Of a DNA stretch of 64,000 bases, positions 29,049 to 34,781 are shown in pieces. The notes beneath the pieces were generated by a model. The model saw only the letters and a program-made list of their open reading frames with translations, had not been told where the DNA came from and made no database searches. The position numbers were made by a program, and so were the translations under genes. The DNA is taken from NCBI GenBank assembly GCA_964019335.1, contig OZ025733.1, positions 124,001 to 188,000 on the forward strand. Direction: 5' to 3'. Source of the stretch: Diplonema japonicum. Taxonomy: Eukaryota; Protista; Euglenozoa: Diplonemea. Numbering within the stretch: the stretch's first letter is position 1; every line of letters starts with the position of its first letter.

Positions 29049-29337
29049 AAAGAAAAAAAAAAAAAAAAGAACGAAAAAAAAAAAAAAAACCCTCCCCCCT
29101 CTGGGGGGTTCAAAATCTATTTTTTTTTTTTTTCCCTTGCTATCTTCCCCCCGTCCCTCTAAAAAAAAATTTTTTTTGTGCTTTCTGGTACCTTTTTTTT
29201 TTTTCTTTTTTTTTTCTCTCAGTTAGTTCCATATAGGCCCTGCATTTTTTATGTATCCGCCTGCTATTCTTCTTTTTTTTTCTTTTCCCTTTTTTTTCTG
29301 TCGCTTGCCTGTTTGTGCTGTGTTGTCTCGAAAGAAA

Positions 29338-29386
<49 letters not shown>

Positions 29387-29675
29387 GAGAAAAAGAAAAT
29401 GTAAAAAGAAGAAGAGAAGAAAAAAAAAAAAGAAGAGGGAAAATAAATAAAATAAAAACAGCACCCCCCAAAAAAAAATAACAGATAACAAACCGCAACC
29501 AAGAGTAGTGTCAATTTTTTTTGTTCCAACTTTTTTTTATTTTCTTGCCCCCTCTAAAAGGGTGTTTAAAGTAAAAAAGATCCCCCCCCCCCGCTCTGGG
29601 GCAAAAAAAGAAACCAAATCCAATTGTTACACGAAGGTTCCTTCCAGTAGTTTTTTTTTTTTCTTCTTTTTATTT

Positions 29676-29961
29676 GGTGGTGGGGATAACATGGAAATAT
29701 AAGAAAAACATCAGATGTGTTGTTCGCTGTTGACATCACCGGTAGCGCCCGAGTGGAAGAACATAATGCAGATGCTCAGGGTGACGAACAGGCAGCAAAC
29801 TGCACGAGCGCAGAATCTTGGTTTCCCTGGACGCCACGGCTCACGCATTAAGGACACGACGCGGAACGCAGAAGAAGCTACAACTCGGCCGCGGTGCGCC
29901 CCCTGTAATCAAGTAGACAGTTCTTGTGCAGGGCGCCGCCAACACCGGCCTCCTATAACTC
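29676..29961 (+). mobile_element. Ribozyme-headed retroelement copy 1 (P3/L3 deleted; tail A)
   Basis: Starts ggtggtggggataacatgg, lacks the ctcctcgtcggt segment, otherwise aligns with copies 2-4. Confidence 0.85.
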
Positions 29962-30056
29962 ATATATTTTTATTTAATTCTGAGCGGCTCTCTTAAGGAA
30001 CTTAGGGTAGAAGATATAATTCAGGCTTCACTTCATTTCAAGTCCAGACCTGGGCG

Positions 30057-31036
30057 TGAAATAAAGTATCTGATTTTTTTTTCCCCTCATGTTTTTAAGC
30101 TAAACGTTGCTGGGCGTGAAAATCAGGTACTTTATTTCAAAATGGGGAAAAAACCGAAGGCGACCGGGAAGGCACAAATTATTTGCGAGAGCAGCTCATC
30201 ATTAAATAAAATGTAGTATTGAATAAAATCAGAGCATGATTTCACTTGTGGGGTCCCCTTTTTTGACTCGTTTTTTTACCACAAGTGGAATCAGGCCATC
30301 TGATTTTCATTTAATAAATAGCTATTACTTAATTCCGCAAAGTTACATGAGGAAATTTCTAAAGGGCCATAAGAATCAGAAATCACTTTGCCGTTCACGA
30401 GTAAATGCAAAGTGAAGAATAAATGCAAAGTAATAGGCCGAATTTGGCTTGAAAAAAGTGCAATAAATGCAAAATGTAAAATCTGATTTTTACTCTGAGC
30501 AATTTTCGGGCTTTTTTTTGGTATTCGTCTTCATTTTTTGCATCTGGTGTGCCGCTTTACAAACGTCACTCGACATATAAATAAACTGGTTCGCAAAATA
30601 TGAGACGTAACCCAACCTGCCCAAAACACAGTCAGGCATCCGAGGCAAAAGAGGCATAAACACACTTTACCAGGTTTCCGAGCCACCAAGCATCACACCT
30701 GAGGCCGGCAAATGCCGAAAATTACACTGGCCATGCATACTTGTTGATGAAGGAACCTGATGAAAGAACCGTTTGCACAAACCAGCAGTTTCTGAAGAGC
30801 GATGATCAAGTGCCGACACAAATTACACAAAACCTACAGAATTCTGTCAATTTGACATCATCTTCTCAGGCAATCAGGCTTAGTTTTGACATCAATGTGA
30901 ACATTTCGCAGAAGTGAACATAAAGGGTTCACAGTGTCCGAAATTTCCTCATTTAACTTTGCAAAAATTAAGTAAAATATCATACTAAATAAAAATCAGG
31001 TAATCTGATTTTTATTTAGTAAATAGTCATTATTTT
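30057..31036. mobile_element. AT-rich element with nested inverted repeats (~60-bp imperfect IRs at 30300-30359 / 30940-30999)
   Basis: ctgattttcatttaataaatagctattacttaattccgcaaagttacatgaggaaatttc versus its near reverse complement. Extra hairpin at 30057-30139. No ORF. Confidence 0.6.
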
Positions 31037-31921
31037 TCTCCTCTTTTTTCGCTTAAATCAGACCCCTCGGCAAGGTAGGGATAGTTCGAAAAGAGAATTG
31101 CCGGTCTACATAGACCCGCGATTTTTCTTGTACCTGTGCGGTAGCCCCCTTTTTTTTGTGAAGATTTCCCCCCCCCCCCCCCCCCCCCCTCCGTTTTATT
31201 ATTCATTTAAATCTTACTCTGCCGGTTCGATATTGACCATAAGACCTATGCAGGTGTAGAACTTGGCAAAGAGGCGAAAAACAAAGTGTGGAAGAGGAAC
31301 TAGGTTAAGGACGTGAAAGACCAGTCTTGTAGTGGCTGGGCGTTTCAGGCTCAAGGTACAGCAGCGGTCAATCACAGTTTCAGTAAAAGCTGCGCCTGAG
31401 AAACTGTGCTGTTCTTTTTGAGAGTGAAGATTTCATCGGTTGCGTGATAAAAACGATTTCATGAAATAAAAAAAAAATAAAAAAAAGAGAAAAAAAAAAG
31501 ATTTTCACAGTGCGCTGATCGAGAGGCCCAATTGAAAAAAAAAAAAAAAAAAAAAAGGGTCCAAAAAATCGGCCAAGAATACCGCAGGTCTAACGGGGAA
31601 AAAAAAAACCCGTTTTGAACCGGGGCCCTGCTTAAATGTTTTTTTTTTTTTTTCTTTTTTTTTTGAGGGAACGGAAGGCATAAGGCCTTTTTGTACACTC
31701 GCTTGTCAAGGCGTGCGGCTTTCCCCCCCCTTTTTTTTCTTATTTTTTGTCCAACAGGTGGACAGGAGCCGCGGTGTATTGCCCCGCCATCCCTGCGATG
31801 CGCTGGCGGAAAAGTGAGATTCAAAAAGCTTTAAGGGGGAACGTTGGCAACGTGCTTCGGGCAAACTTCTCCAGGTTTTACCCGGCACGTACAAACAAAA
31901 GTGTTTTTTTTAGGTTTTATA

Positions 31922-32055
31922 GGTGGTGGGGATAACATGGAAATATAAGAAGTACATCAGATGTGTTGTTCGCTGTTGACCTCCTCGTCGGTCATCACCG
32001 GTAGCGCCCGAGTGGAAGAACGTAACGCAGATGCTCAGGGTGACGAACAGGCAGC
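31922..32055 (+). ncRNA. HDV-like self-cleaving ribozyme
   Basis: P1 ggtggtg/catcacc; J1/2 hairpin ggataacat/gtgttgttc; P2 gctgttg/ca(g)gcagc; P3 acc/ggt; L3 tcctcgtc; P1.1 gg; P4 cgcccgagt/gctc(a)gggtg; J4/2 gaCgaa with predicted catalytic C32044. Confidence 0.88.
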
Positions 32056-32246
32056 AAACTGCACGAGCGCAGAATCTTGGTTACCCGGGACGCCACGGCT
32101 AGGGTTGAGCACACCGCACGCATTAAGGACACGACGCGGAACGCAGAAGAAGCTACTGCTCGGCCGAGGAGCGCCCCTGTAATCAAGTAGGTAGTTCGTG
32201 CTTCATTGCACGCTTAACGCCACCTAGTGTTGCAATCAAAGCCCCA
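31922..32246 (+). mobile_element. Ribozyme-headed retroelement copy 2 (intact; tail B)
   Basis: Full ribozyme, second long stem-loop domain, tail B, then a T tract. Confidence 0.88.
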
Positions 32247-32332
32247 TTTTTTTTTTTTCTTTTTTATTGCTACACACTACAGCTTGATGTTGAAATGGTT
32301 CCCTTCTTCTTTTTCTCTTTGAAACATCCGGG

Positions 32333-32364
<32 letters not shown>

Positions 32365-32475
32365 GCCTAGCGAGGTTTTTGCAACTCCGGAATCATTTTT
32401 TTTTTTTTTTTTTCATGAATGCTCACACAAAAATATATGAGGAAGAGGTGGGGGGGAAGAAGAAAAAAAAGGAGG

Positions 32476-32507
<32 letters not shown>

Positions 32508-32811
32508 ATAATGGGACTAATATATATCTTTCTTTCCTTTCCTTTCCCTAGGACTATGATGGCAAGACCCGTAAAAAAGAAATCACGCGCTTTCTTGCCA
32601 TCACATCCTCCCCCGCCCCATTCTTTACTTAATTTGTTTTCTTTTTCTGTTTTTCTGTTACTACCTTTAGTATCATGTGAACCTCTTAATTTCTTTGCCC
32701 CCCCGAAGAGAAAAGGACGTTCCGCAGCCAACAGGGGTGTCAAGGACCAAATATTTTTTTTTGCCCCCCCTTTCTTTTTTTACCTTTATCTCTTTTATAT
32801 ATATTTTTTAA

Positions 32812-33036
32812 GGTGGTGGGGATAACGGTCATCACCGGTAGCACCCGAGTGGAAGAACATAATGCAGATGCTCAGGGTGACGAACAGGCAGCAAACTGCA
32901 CGAGCGCAGAATCTTGGTTTCCCGGGACGCCCCGGCTAGGGTTGAGCACTGGCCGAGGAGTGCCACCTGTAATCAAGTAGGTAGTTCGTGCTTCGTTGCA
33001 CGCTTAACGCCACCTAGTGTTGCAATCAAAGCCCCA
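32812..33036 (+). mobile_element. Ribozyme-headed retroelement copy 3 (internal deletions; tail B)
   Basis: Same 5' start, with deletion of most of J1/2-P2-L3 and of the apex of the second domain. Confidence 0.85.
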
Positions 33037-34143
33037 TTTTTTTTTTTTCTTATTTTTCGAAAAGTAATTAAAGAGGTTTACATTTTTTTTTTTTTTTTTT
33101 TTTTAATATTTCCGGCAAACTCTTTGCTGCGTTCATTGTGCAGTTCTATTGGACTTTGCCGTTCCCACAAGTCTGGAACCTGGCTCGCACAGTTTTTTTT
33201 TTTTTTTTTTTAAGGGGTTGGGTACATTTCCCCCCCCTCCCCCTCCGCTGCGAGGCACTGCGTGCGCGGACTTTGTTAATGAGGCTCTTAGTGAGTGAAG
33301 AAAAATGACAAAAAGTGTGAAAATCGAACAGATTTTGTCTTTCTTTTTTTTCTTCGTTCATGGTTTCATCAGCAACTACCCCCCCCCCCCCCCCCCCCCC
33401 CCCTGTCGTAATGGTGCCCATTTAACTTTTTGTGCGTTTGCAAAAAAAAAAAAAAAAAAAAAAAAACGCTTCCTTACGTTCACGGCCCCAAAAATGAGAA
33501 AGAAAGAGAGAAAAAAGAAATTCGATGAAAAAAAAAAACCCCCCAACTAACGAATATTCTGAGGGAAAAAAAAAAGAAAGAAACAATGCTCATCATATTT
33601 CCTGTGTCACCCCATCCCACGTTTTTTTTTTTCTCCCCCCTTCCTCATCCTATCTTTGTTTTTGTTTCTGGTTCTTGTTTTGTGTTTCTTTTCTTTTTCT
33701 TATCTCTAAAAAGGGGCACCAAAGATGCTTATTTATTTCTTTTGTCCCTGTTTTTTTTCTTCTTTTTTTCTTTTCTTTTTTATAATTATTATTCCCTTTC
33801 TGCCCCTTTTGGCAATGTAGCAGTTTTTTTTTTTTTTTTTTTTTCTTCTTCTTTTTTTTGCTATCTAAATATATAAAAAAGAATGTTCTAAACAACAAAG
33901 GAAAGCAAAGCTTTCTTTAACAAAACAAAAAAAAAATGATTGAAAGAAGAAATATTTCCTCCTGTTTGCCTCCAATTTCCGGGAAAAGAAGTGGGAAAGG
34001 GAACAAGAAAAAAAAAAGAAAAAAAAACCCTCCCCTGATTTTCACGAAAAAAAGTTTTTTTTTTCCAATAAATGACTCGATATGACAGGTGATAAAAAAA
34101 AAGATGATTTCTGCTTCTTTTTTTTTTTTTTTTTTTTTTTTTT

Positions 34144-34258
34144 GGATACGGCCATACTCTGGTGAATGCACCCCATCCCGCCTGATTTGGGAAGTTAAGC
34201 ACCAGCAGGCCAGGTTAGTACTGCGGTGAGTGATCACGTGGGAAGCCCTGCTGTATCC
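34144..34258 (+). rRNA. 5S rRNA copy (probable retro-pseudogene or SINE3-type head)
   Basis: ggatacggccatac...gaagttaagc...ggttagtact...gggaa...gctgtatcc with a 9-bp terminal helix. 115 nt with an apparent ~3-nt loss in the 3' strand of helix V and no oligo-T terminator. Confidence 0.93.
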
Positions 34259-34267
34259 TCCAAACCA

Positions 34268-34396
34268 GGTGGTGGGGATAACATGGAAATATAAAGAAGT
34301 ACATCAGATGTGTTGTTCGCTGTTGACCTCCTCGTCGGTCATCACCGGTAGCGCCCGAGTGGAAGAAGCAGATGCTCTGGGTGGCGAACAGGCAGC
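34268..34396 (+). ncRNA. HDV-like self-cleaving ribozyme
   Basis: Same P1/P2/P3/L3/P1.1 as copy 2, shorter P4 loop, J4/2 ggCgaa (C34385) as in the HDV genomic ribozyme. Confidence 0.88.
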
Positions 34397-34581
34397 AAAC
34401 TACACGGGCTCAGAATCTTGGTTACCCGGGGCGCCCCGGCTGGGGTTGAGCTGCACACCGCACGCATTAAGGACACGACGCGGAACGCAGAAGAAGCTAC
34501 AGCTAGGCCGAGGTGCGCCCCCTGTAATCAAGTAAATGGTGCTTGTGCAGGGTGCCCCCACCGGCTTCCTTTAAATCACCG

Positions 34582-34583
<2 letters not shown>
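34268..34583 (+). mobile_element. Ribozyme-headed retroelement copy 4 (intact ribozyme; tail A variant), fused behind 5S
   Basis: Aligns with copies 1-3 and is followed by a long T tract. Confidence 0.88.
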
Positions 34584-34615
<32 letters not shown>

Positions 34616-34653
34616 GAAAAAAGGACCATATGAGGGCATTTTTTACGAATAAA

Positions 34654-34690
34654 AAAATAAAATAAAATAAAATAAAATAAAATAAAATAA
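34654..34690. repeat. (AAAAT)n microsatellite
   Basis: About 7 units visible. Confidence 0.85.
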
Positions 34691-34781
34691 AAAAAAAAAA
34701 GAGGTTTGCAGCAAGTATTGTGGGCCGTAAAATTCTTCCCCATCATAGCCACCACCACCACCACCACTACCCCCCTCCACA

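Follow-up and report, generated by a model that had tools for sequence, protein, structure and literature searches.

A 64,000-nucleotide (nt) stretch of the diplonemid Diplonema japonicum (contig OZ025733.1, positions 124,001 to 188,000 of the forward strand, assembly GCA_964019335.1), hereafter the window, contains a long intergenic region, 29049-34719, that lies between plus-strand open reading frames (ORFs) and is rich in homopolymer runs. Four copies of a short repeat occur within it. Alignment places the start of all four, beginning GGTGGTGGGGATAA, on the same G (29676, 31922, 32812 and 34268), and their upstream flanks are unrelated and mostly T-rich. An original prediction, made from the letters of the window alone, had noted this shared start among unrelated flanks, which the alignment bears out, and had proposed a family of non-autonomous retroelements headed by a self-cleaving ribozyme of the hepatitis delta virus (HDV) type. 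Our preferred reading, held with a probability of roughly 0.78, is that the repeat is a ~325-nt non-autonomous retroposon, or short interspersed element (SINE), headed over its first 134 nt by an HDV-like ribozyme, freed from co-transcripts, and copied by two long interspersed element (LINE) families, designated E and F. Features of the locus are given in Table 1; loci (L) and contigs (C) elsewhere in the genome are cited by our own handles.

The four copies carry two kinds of 3' tail, type A (CAAAGCCCCA) in copies 2 and 3 and type B (CTCATATA or a variant of it) in copies 1 and 4. The tail of copy 1 matches the 3' untranslated region (UTR) of LINE E/F. That copies 1 and 3 are broken had been implied, and so they are: copy 1 lacks element bases 59-71, that is, most of helix P3 and all of loop L3, and copy 3 lacks bases 15-67 (53 nt, comprising J1/2, the 5' strands of P2 and P3, and L3) together with part of the body. 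Because of these head deletions neither can form the fold described below, and the ribozyme of copy 1 is dead.

Table 1. Repeat copies, predicted ribozyme elements and flanking features in the window
Feature	Position	Strand	Description
Copy 1 target-site duplication (TSD), left	29667-29675		exact 9 nt TTTTTATTT; abuts G1
SINE copy 1	29676-29966	+	291 nt; type-B 3' tail ending CTCATATA; private 13-nt deletion
Copy 1 TSD, right	29967-29975		exact 9 nt TTTTTATTT; abuts final tail base
SINE copy 2, full length	31922-32246	+	325 nt; type-A tail ending CAAAGCCCCA; T-run 32247-32258 directly 3'
Predicted HDV-like ribozyme, copy 2	31922-32055	+	134 nt; predicted cleavage 5' of G31922; descriptor, parse, weak RF00094 alignment
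Copy 2 P1	31922-31928 / 31993-31999	+	GGTGGTG / CATCACC; 7 bp, one G.U
Copy 2 J1/2 insert	31929-31971	+	43 nt; predicted closing stem 31930-31939 / 31962-31971
Copy 2 P2	31972-31977 / 32050-32055	+	GCTGTT / GGCAGC; also in nested minimum-free-energy (MFE) fold
Copy 2 P3/L3/P3'	31979-31992	+	ACC / L3 TCCTCGTC / GGT
Copy 2 P1.1	32000-32001		GG, directly after P1 3' strand; pairs with two L3 C's
Copy 2 P4 hairpin	32005-32042	+	CGCCCGAGTG ... TGCTC A GGGTG
Copy 2 J4/2	32043-32049	+	ACGAACA; predicted catalytic C32044
SINE copy 3	32812-33036	+	225 nt; type-A tail; then T-run 33037-33048
T26 run	34118-34143		upstream of 5S-SINE chimera; probable left TSD, partner T25 34584-34608
5S rRNA sequence	34144-34259	+	Rfam RF00001, 86.9 bits; then 8-nt linker 34260-34267 to copy 4 G1
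SINE copy 4	34268-34583	+	316 nt; c4-type subfamily; variant type-B tail
Predicted HDV-like ribozyme, copy 4	34268-34396	+	129 nt; same elements; predicted catalytic C34385
T25 run	34584-34608		after copy 4; right-hand TSD and/or tail

An HDV-like fold at the first base of the repeat

In copies 2 and 4, a parse by coordinates recovers the complete set of HDV-fold elements in the order that had been proposed, P1-P2-P3-L3-P3'-P1'-(P1.1)-P4-J4/2-P2'. The catalytic cytosines fall where they had been placed beforehand (C32044 and C34385), and P1 starts at element base 1, so that the boundary of the repeat is also the predicted cleavage site. By descriptor and explicit parse, the same order fits not only the SINE but LINE E, LINE F and another short family, G, described below. 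The stem predicted to close the J1/2 insert of copy 2 resembles a P1.2 peripheral domain, and the first six L3 bases of that copy match the HDV consensus in the Rfam alignment. On this structural model, self-cleavage 5' of G1 is the predicted activity.

A search with an HDV descriptor, one of the checks suggested originally, was run on both strands of the window. The strict form calls for a P1 of 7 bp that contains no more than one G.U, a Watson-Crick P3 of 3 bp, a 7-8-nt L3 whose positions 2-3 are CC, GG after P1', a P4 no shorter than 4 bp, C[GT]AA, and 5 bp or more of P2; only 31922 and 34268 match. The full descriptor finds 0 matches in 150 dinucleotide-preserving shuffles (19.2 Mb), and its partial levels find 90 and 2. 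Chance does not explain the fold, whose margin over the shuffles spans several orders of magnitude and which also starts on the first base of the repeat. The descriptor was composed after the sequence was seen and its freedom is somewhat generous, and the Rfam score, reported below, is far under threshold; these points would suit an ordinary dispersed repeat or small-RNA gene family that merely happens to look like HDV. Such a coincidence is extremely unlikely, given the empty shuffles and two further results. A relaxed descriptor (6-7-bp P1, J4/2 C-N-R-A) matches by chance 1.25 times per Mb (16 matches in 12.8 Mb of shuffles), yet it matches at element base 1 in 10 of 10 LINE heads, and family G independently fits the same fold at its own base 1.

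A dispersed family of retroposons

The whole assembly (62.5 Mb, 132 contigs) was searched for further copies. The 15-base SINE head occurs 717 times, versus once for a reversed control, and a 15-mer near the SINE 3' end occurs 905 times. A BLAST-type search returns 1478 first-look candidates, among them at least 40 copies that are 98-99% identical to copy 2. We place the family at 700 or more copies with an intact head and roughly 1000-1500 in all. Two samples were examined, 29 of the best copies and 60 unselected head-bearing copies, and most sampled copies have unrelated flanks. The full descriptor is passed by 25 of 28 young copies and by 24 of the 60 unselected ones; the failures are one-off deletions, each different as in copies 1 and 3 of the window, or CpG transitions, and no amplified lineage lacking the ribozyme core was seen among the sampled copies. 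Where the copy is intact, subfamilies commonly vary in J1/2, at the fourth base of L3 (U, C or A), and in P4 at the apical loop and a bulge.

The hallmarks of retroposition are present, in keeping with the non-autonomous retroelement proposed originally: TSDs, 5' truncations, about 1000 dispersed copies, and 5' fusions made at the RNA level. Most TSDs around SINE copies consist of a T-run, alone or followed by A, of 6-13 nt, and exact non-homopolymeric duplications occur around copy 1 of the window, at L093 (TAATTTA) and around a 5S-SINE unit at L034 (TTTTCA). True 5'-truncated copies with T-rich upstream flanks are exemplified by L116, L121 and L129. Of 38 copies, 24 have the longer T-run downstream and 12 have it upstream, and several TSDs leave no space for a U-tail on the SINE RNA. 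The sense orientation, which co-transcription requires, predominates among young copies when they are compared with flanking long ORFs (30:11 in all; 26:4 if only ORFs of 250 amino acids or more are counted).

The fusions locate the 5' end of the SINE RNA. Approximately 25 dispersed copies of 5S are present in the genome, five of which are joined to a SINE, each at G1, by five different linkers (CCAAACCA, CTAAACA, CCAAAA, CTAAAA and CCAAACTTTTT). Different SINE subfamilies are involved, and TSDs flank each chimera as a unit. Other 5S copies are joined to unrelated sequences, including a LINE head. Switching of reverse transcriptase (RT) from the 5' end of one RNA template to the 3' end of another is known for L1, and the junction between 5S and copy 4 is best read as a chimera of this kind, not as a launch pad for RNA polymerase III (Pol III). 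The five junctions differ and all fall at G1, which implies a SINE RNA with its 5' end at G1. A Pol III element, transcribed from an upstream 5S gene or an internal A/B-box promoter to a T-run terminator as in the 5S-derived SINE3, would account for the 5S without its own T-run before copy 4, for the T25 that follows this copy, and for the T-run at the end of most SINE copies. It is nevertheless very improbable. More than 700 SINE copies have no 5S, the few joined 5S copies have junctions that are all different and lie each inside its own TSD, and the remaining 5S copies have unrelated partners or the LINE head. Neither a tRNA-like head nor a signal recognition particle or other Rfam match was found on the SINE head. 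Furthermore, some TSDs stand without any T-run, and the protein-coding LINE has the same T-run ends.

The dispersed 5S copies deserve mention in their own right. Many of them (L032-L042) run on at the 3' end, ..CTAAAC plus 0-5 T, into unrelated sequences, among them the SINE heads (five), a fragment of the LINE E head and further repeats, and the set looks like a population of RT template-switch chimeras and not of 5S genes. L037 and L040 do hold genuine-looking 5S genes, with a T-run terminator and adjoining spliced-leader-like sequence. A supposed separate repeat in L041, beginning GGGGCTGGTAATTT, was rejected as such; it is a chimera composed, in this order, of 5S, 14 nt of LINE head and an unrelated repeat.

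A second kind of fusion involves the host spliced leader, which is of the kinetoplastid/diplonemid type and ends ..CAGTTTCTGTACTTTATTG. The 39-nt leader, without its first A, is fused at G1 or G2 of the SINE in L016, L062 and L087, and in L062 the ribozyme is broken as well, by a deletion. L037 has this leader too, there followed by GT. The fusions imply trans-splicing of some element RNAs at the AG that flank and G1 make up between them. Trans-splicing might then be taken to make the SINE 5' end in general, with the upstream T-run and A|G1 as splice acceptor, and the typical flank, a T-run followed by A, has the right form. There is very little likelihood of this, as the three fused copies are 3 of ~95 and the leader is absent from ~97%, the base before G1 is T, C or G in many copies, and the 5S junctions show leaderless RNA ends at G1.

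Some decayed SINE copies recur in one of two set contexts, preceded by ..CTTTTATCTTCTTTTTCA or by a type-B tail with TCATTCA (L055-L057, L064, L075, L085, L090, L092, L098, L100 and L112-L114). These form tandem or composite repeats in one region per contig (for example, C1:652-659 kb, C3:592 kb and C8:836-841 kb), and the clustered fields may be centromere-like or strand-switch repeat fields.

Within the window, copy 2 contains a 73-codon ORF (31961-32182, plus strand) that opens at an ATG in J1/2, crosses the SINE body and stops at a TAA in CCTGTAATC; the lengths of two subfamily indels within it, -6 and +3, are divisible by three, which may be chance. Directly upstream of copy 2 is a partial copy (31787-31905) of another repeat family, which ends ..ACAAACAACGGCCAGTTCC, has 369 first-look candidates, and is seen also at L041:1373-1497 and L026:1-60. 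In L026 two such units appear to abut head to tail, an arrangement visible only at the locus edge. Further short repeats, with very high contig depth in public runs, occupy 30020-30530 and include a hairpin-forming unit at ~30222-30311.

LINE E/F and families that share its predicted fold

The genome contains 625 RT candidates and many intact LINEs. LINE families E and F, with 27 full-length heads, encode an ORF of ~2000 amino acids with apurinic endonuclease (APE) and RT domains and no match to an RNase H domain. Both ends of these LINEs are related to those of the SINE. At the 3' end, LINE E/F finish with ..CTTCCTTTAACTCATATAT and a T-run; the last ~20 nt (..C[CT]TCCTTTAACTCATATA) are common to LINE E/F and the type-B SINE tail, and further similarity extends over ~45 nt, so that these last 20-45 nt of the SINE probably derive from the LINE E/F 3' UTR. 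At the 5' end, the LINEs start at GGGGCTGG directly after a T-run and a few bases, as the SINE does, and their first ~113 nt, upstream of the main-frame ATG (L158:205), align to the SINE head in J1/2 and the core. Because both ends are shared, the SINE is a two-ended derivative of the LINE E/F lineage, in the manner of NARTc, RIME and the R2 SIDEs. The original prediction had the SINE borrow a LINE RT, and this dependence now has a specific candidate, a LINE that has the 3' tail and the target type in common with the SINE and carries a homologous ribozyme fold at its 5' end; the account is to be corrected in that the SINE derives from the two ends of its LINE and is not an unrelated element. 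As judged from sequence, LINE E/F most likely copies the SINE. The nearest named relatives of LINE E are ORFs of Diplonema papillatum at 34-48% identity, and an identical LINE E protein is present in a EukProt transcriptome, which indicates that the LINE is expressed. No LINE with the exact SINE head was found near any RT match listed, nor among 60 sampled heads.

Two observations on the LINEs themselves may be recorded. LINE E (L158:88-6192) has a stretch of ~1.7 kb in which two frames are open at once; the one that begins with the ATG at 119 (119-1876) encodes 585 amino acids without a Pfam match, and the first ATG of the long APE-RT frame is at 205. LINE family A, which has APE, RT and RNase H domains and a poly(A) tail, was considered as the partner and rejected, as neither of its ends is common to the SINE. 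It is INGI-like and occurs in head-to-tail arrays with a period of ~7.6 kb (L054, C52:155500-163500), with RT matches on C52, C61, C51 and C13, and an 817-amino-acid upstream frame is separated from a 1429-amino-acid frame by a single in-frame stop.

Searching with the shared-core pattern, SINE excluded, revealed two more families, G and H. Family G is non-autonomous, ~445 nt long, and present in at least 91 copies with T-rich flanks (for instance, L159-L166 and L002:2528-2970). It ends ..GAGACAAC and has T-rich or AT-rich TSDs, including an exact ATTTAAT duplication in L161. On explicit structural parse, its first 76 nt form a compact HDV-like fold that starts at base 1, with P1 GGGGACC/GGUUCCU (G1.U wobble), a 4-nt J1/2, P2 GUUUCC/GGAAAC, P3 ACC/GGU, L3 UCCCUGU, GG, P4 and CGAA. 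Family H comprises 16 copies of the core ACCTCCTCGTGGTACCCACCGG with SINE-like J1/2 upstream (e.g. C11:240765 and C25:23579). The 7-nt P1 5' strand predicted from its P1' (ACCCACC) was not found; a GTGGGAC lies ~57 nt upstream and is compatible with a 6-bp P1.

Comparison of these heads reveals a constant core within changing helices. The SINE, LINE E, LINE F and family G all have P3 ACC/GGU, L3 UCCNNGU, GG after P1' and the J4/2 C (C-GAA or C-AAA). The helices of the SINE are P1 GGUGGUG/CAUCACC and P2 GCUGUU/GGCAGC; those of the LINEs are P1 GGGGCU/GGCCCU and P2 CUGGGGA/UCCCCAG in E or GCUGGGG/CCCCAGC in F. Cognate P1 and P2 strands pair fully (6/6 to 7/7), and strands swapped between families pair at only 1-5 of 6-7 positions. 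The P4 helices of LINE E and LINE F differ by one double and two single changes, all of which keep the pairs. Compensatory change between families is thus plain in P1, P2 and P4.

The same comparison bears on whether G1 might instead mark where transcription begins, under an internal promoter located within the first ~100 nt, with the fold a relic or inactive. The precedent is Pr77, which in trypanosomatids acts as both promoter and ribozyme (PMC3383444), and conservation of the head among active lineages fits a promoter as well. A promoter fails to explain why P1, P2 and P4 change across three families yet stay complementary, or why the fold starts at base 1 in every family, and we consider a promoter in place of a ribozyme unlikely. 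An internal promoter and the ribozyme could both reside in the head, as they do in Pr77.

Interpretation and comparison with known systems

Several results weigh against a ribozyme-headed, LINE-copied SINE as we read it. The match to the Rfam HDV model RF00094 scores 13.6 bits, seen only in a 151-nt search, versus a gathering score of 50, and an Rfam scan of the region at the gathering threshold and at E up to 10 returns only the 5S gene and noise. In this covariance-model search, of the kind suggested originally, the core aligns to the HDV model, at a score under the gathering score, over P3, L3 (where CCUCCUCG equals the consensus), the 3' strand of P1, GG, P4 and the J4/2 C-GAA. The P1 5' strand is missed, since the 43-nt J1/2 insert is more than the model can span. 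P2, P4 and the J1/2 closing stem are recovered in nested MFE folds, which are not more stable than shuffles (z -0.1 to +0.8). The SINE has a G1-C78 pair, versus the G.U wobble of HDV. In the LINE, P1 is only 6 bp, two of them G.U, and Rfam returns noise only, with no HDV match, on the LINE head. A covariance model built from eight SINE heads misses the LINE heads with default filters and gives 7 bits or less, with P1 misplaced, when the filters are off; this failure is the reason that helix pairs were compared by explicit parse. For the type-A tail, no source was matched among the LINE ends retrieved.

The genome-wide copies supply the remainder. Covariation was to have been sought among copies, and the pairing-preserving change that exists is between families; none occurs within the SINE, whose copies are too young for it. 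Nor is selection on core positions significant when shared and private variants are compared (p = 0.66), because CpG decay recurs in old copies. Homology upstream of GGTGGTG, a possibility raised from the start as damaging, is absent from most copies and present in 13 of the 60 unselected ones, which are decayed copies in larger, secondarily amplified composite or tandem repeats clustered in a few regions. Finally, two of the three leader-fused copies retain an intact fold, which implies that cleavage, if real, is incomplete.

With these points taken into account, we infer the following cycle. Intergenic copies, mostly in the sense orientation, would be transcribed within long unidirectional transcripts. 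The ribozyme would cut directly 5' of G1, discard the upstream RNA and free an RNA that starts at the first base of the element. The LINE E/F protein would then recognize the shared 3' end, nick a T-rich target and reverse-transcribe the RNA into the new site.

A broader proposal is speculative and on balance doubtful: that LINE E/F and its dependents are a guild that inserts in T-runs, the copies being portable RNA-processing modules that re-cut the transcripts of their neighbors, and that an HDV-type core may be ancestral to Pr77. If so, T-run targeting, with the sense strand on the T-rich strand, would be the mirror image of L1 priming at TTTT/A. The T-runs of a host with trans-splicing serve as the polypyrimidine tracts by which trans-splicing and polyadenylation are directed, and each insertion would duplicate such a tract and place behind it an AG (flank A plus G1) and then a ribozyme. 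The canonical HDV-type core might likewise be the ancestral euglenozoan form, with the aberrant Pr77 ribozymes its descendants. Independently of that proposal, the abundance of the SINE, its youth (98-99% identity) and its gene-sense intergenic position make it a candidate shaper of mRNA ends, in a host that regulates its genes mostly after transcription.

HDV-like release of retroelement RNA is established for R2, for RTE-type elements and for the L1Tc/ingi clade. Small RNAs fused to retroelements also have precedents. L1-mediated chimeric retrogenes join U6 or 5S to 3' parts of L1 or Alu within one TSD and at variable junctions. The 5S-SINE units are alike in that a full small RNA is joined upstream, a single TSD encloses the whole and the junctions differ from copy to copy. 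They differ in the switch point, which is random and internal in L1 chimeras and here always the first base of the SINE, as fits a discrete RNA 5' end. In SINE3 of zebrafish, the 5S part is the promoter-bearing head of the family; 5S is likewise on the 5' side of a short retroposon here, but in <1% of SINE copies and with non-identical junctions.

Among non-long terminal repeat elements and their short derivatives, 5' HDV-like ribozymes are described for L1Tc/NARTc, ingi, SIDER, and R2 with its SIDEs (PMC3185411, PMC4035085, PMC3414825), and those of L1Tc/NARTc and R2 release the RNAs from co-transcripts (PMC4035085, PMC3185411). The closest parallel is with L1Tc/NARTc, ingi/RIME and SIDER. 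In both cases a euglenozoan host with polycistronic, trans-spliced transcription carries a LINE and short derivatives that share a 5' HDV-like fold cutting 5' of +1 (here, a prediction), in hundreds to thousands of copies at intergenic or UTR positions. The trypanosomatid ribozymes are ~77 nt, have C1 as their first base, and depart in P1 and P1.1 from both HDV and R2 (PMC4035085). The SINE head, compared with Pr77 by its published description, begins with G1, is 134 nt long and carries a canonical CC/GG P1.1, C-GAA and, in SINE and LINE alike, a structured J1/2 of 40-52 nt; the early remark that it does not resemble the 77-79-nt trypanosomatid signature is upheld. INGI elements carry RNase H and poly(A) tails (PMC12278014), unlike LINE E/F, in which no RNase H is seen and a specific tail with a T-run forms the end.

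R2 and its SIDEs in insects also place an HDV-like ribozyme at the exact 5' junction, and the internally deleted, non-autonomous derivatives keep the ribozyme and the 3' protein-binding end (PMC3414825, PMC3774820). Unlike R2, which has a restriction-like endonuclease and one rDNA site, the present system is APE-type with dispersed T-rich targets. Large ribozymes of the drz-Agam-2 type have no sequence relation to the SINE head and resemble it in a long P1-P2 insert closed by a helix (predicted here); in large HDV-like ribozymes, the J1/2 peripheral helix accelerates cleavage (PMC4908430). The Diplonema genome paper describes abundant retroelement ORFs and scattered rRNA fragments, with no ribozymes reported (PMC10161547), and the literature searched contained no report of ribozyme-headed retroposons in diplonemids or bodonids, nor any on this family.

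Set beside these systems, the family is a well-supported new example of a known trick, the ribozyme-headed retroelement, and not a new kind of system. What it adds, from a different euglenozoan, is a LINE with at least two dependent short families and a core much closer to canonical HDV than is Pr77. The three related folds with different helices in one genome also amount to a set of natural compensatory mutants.

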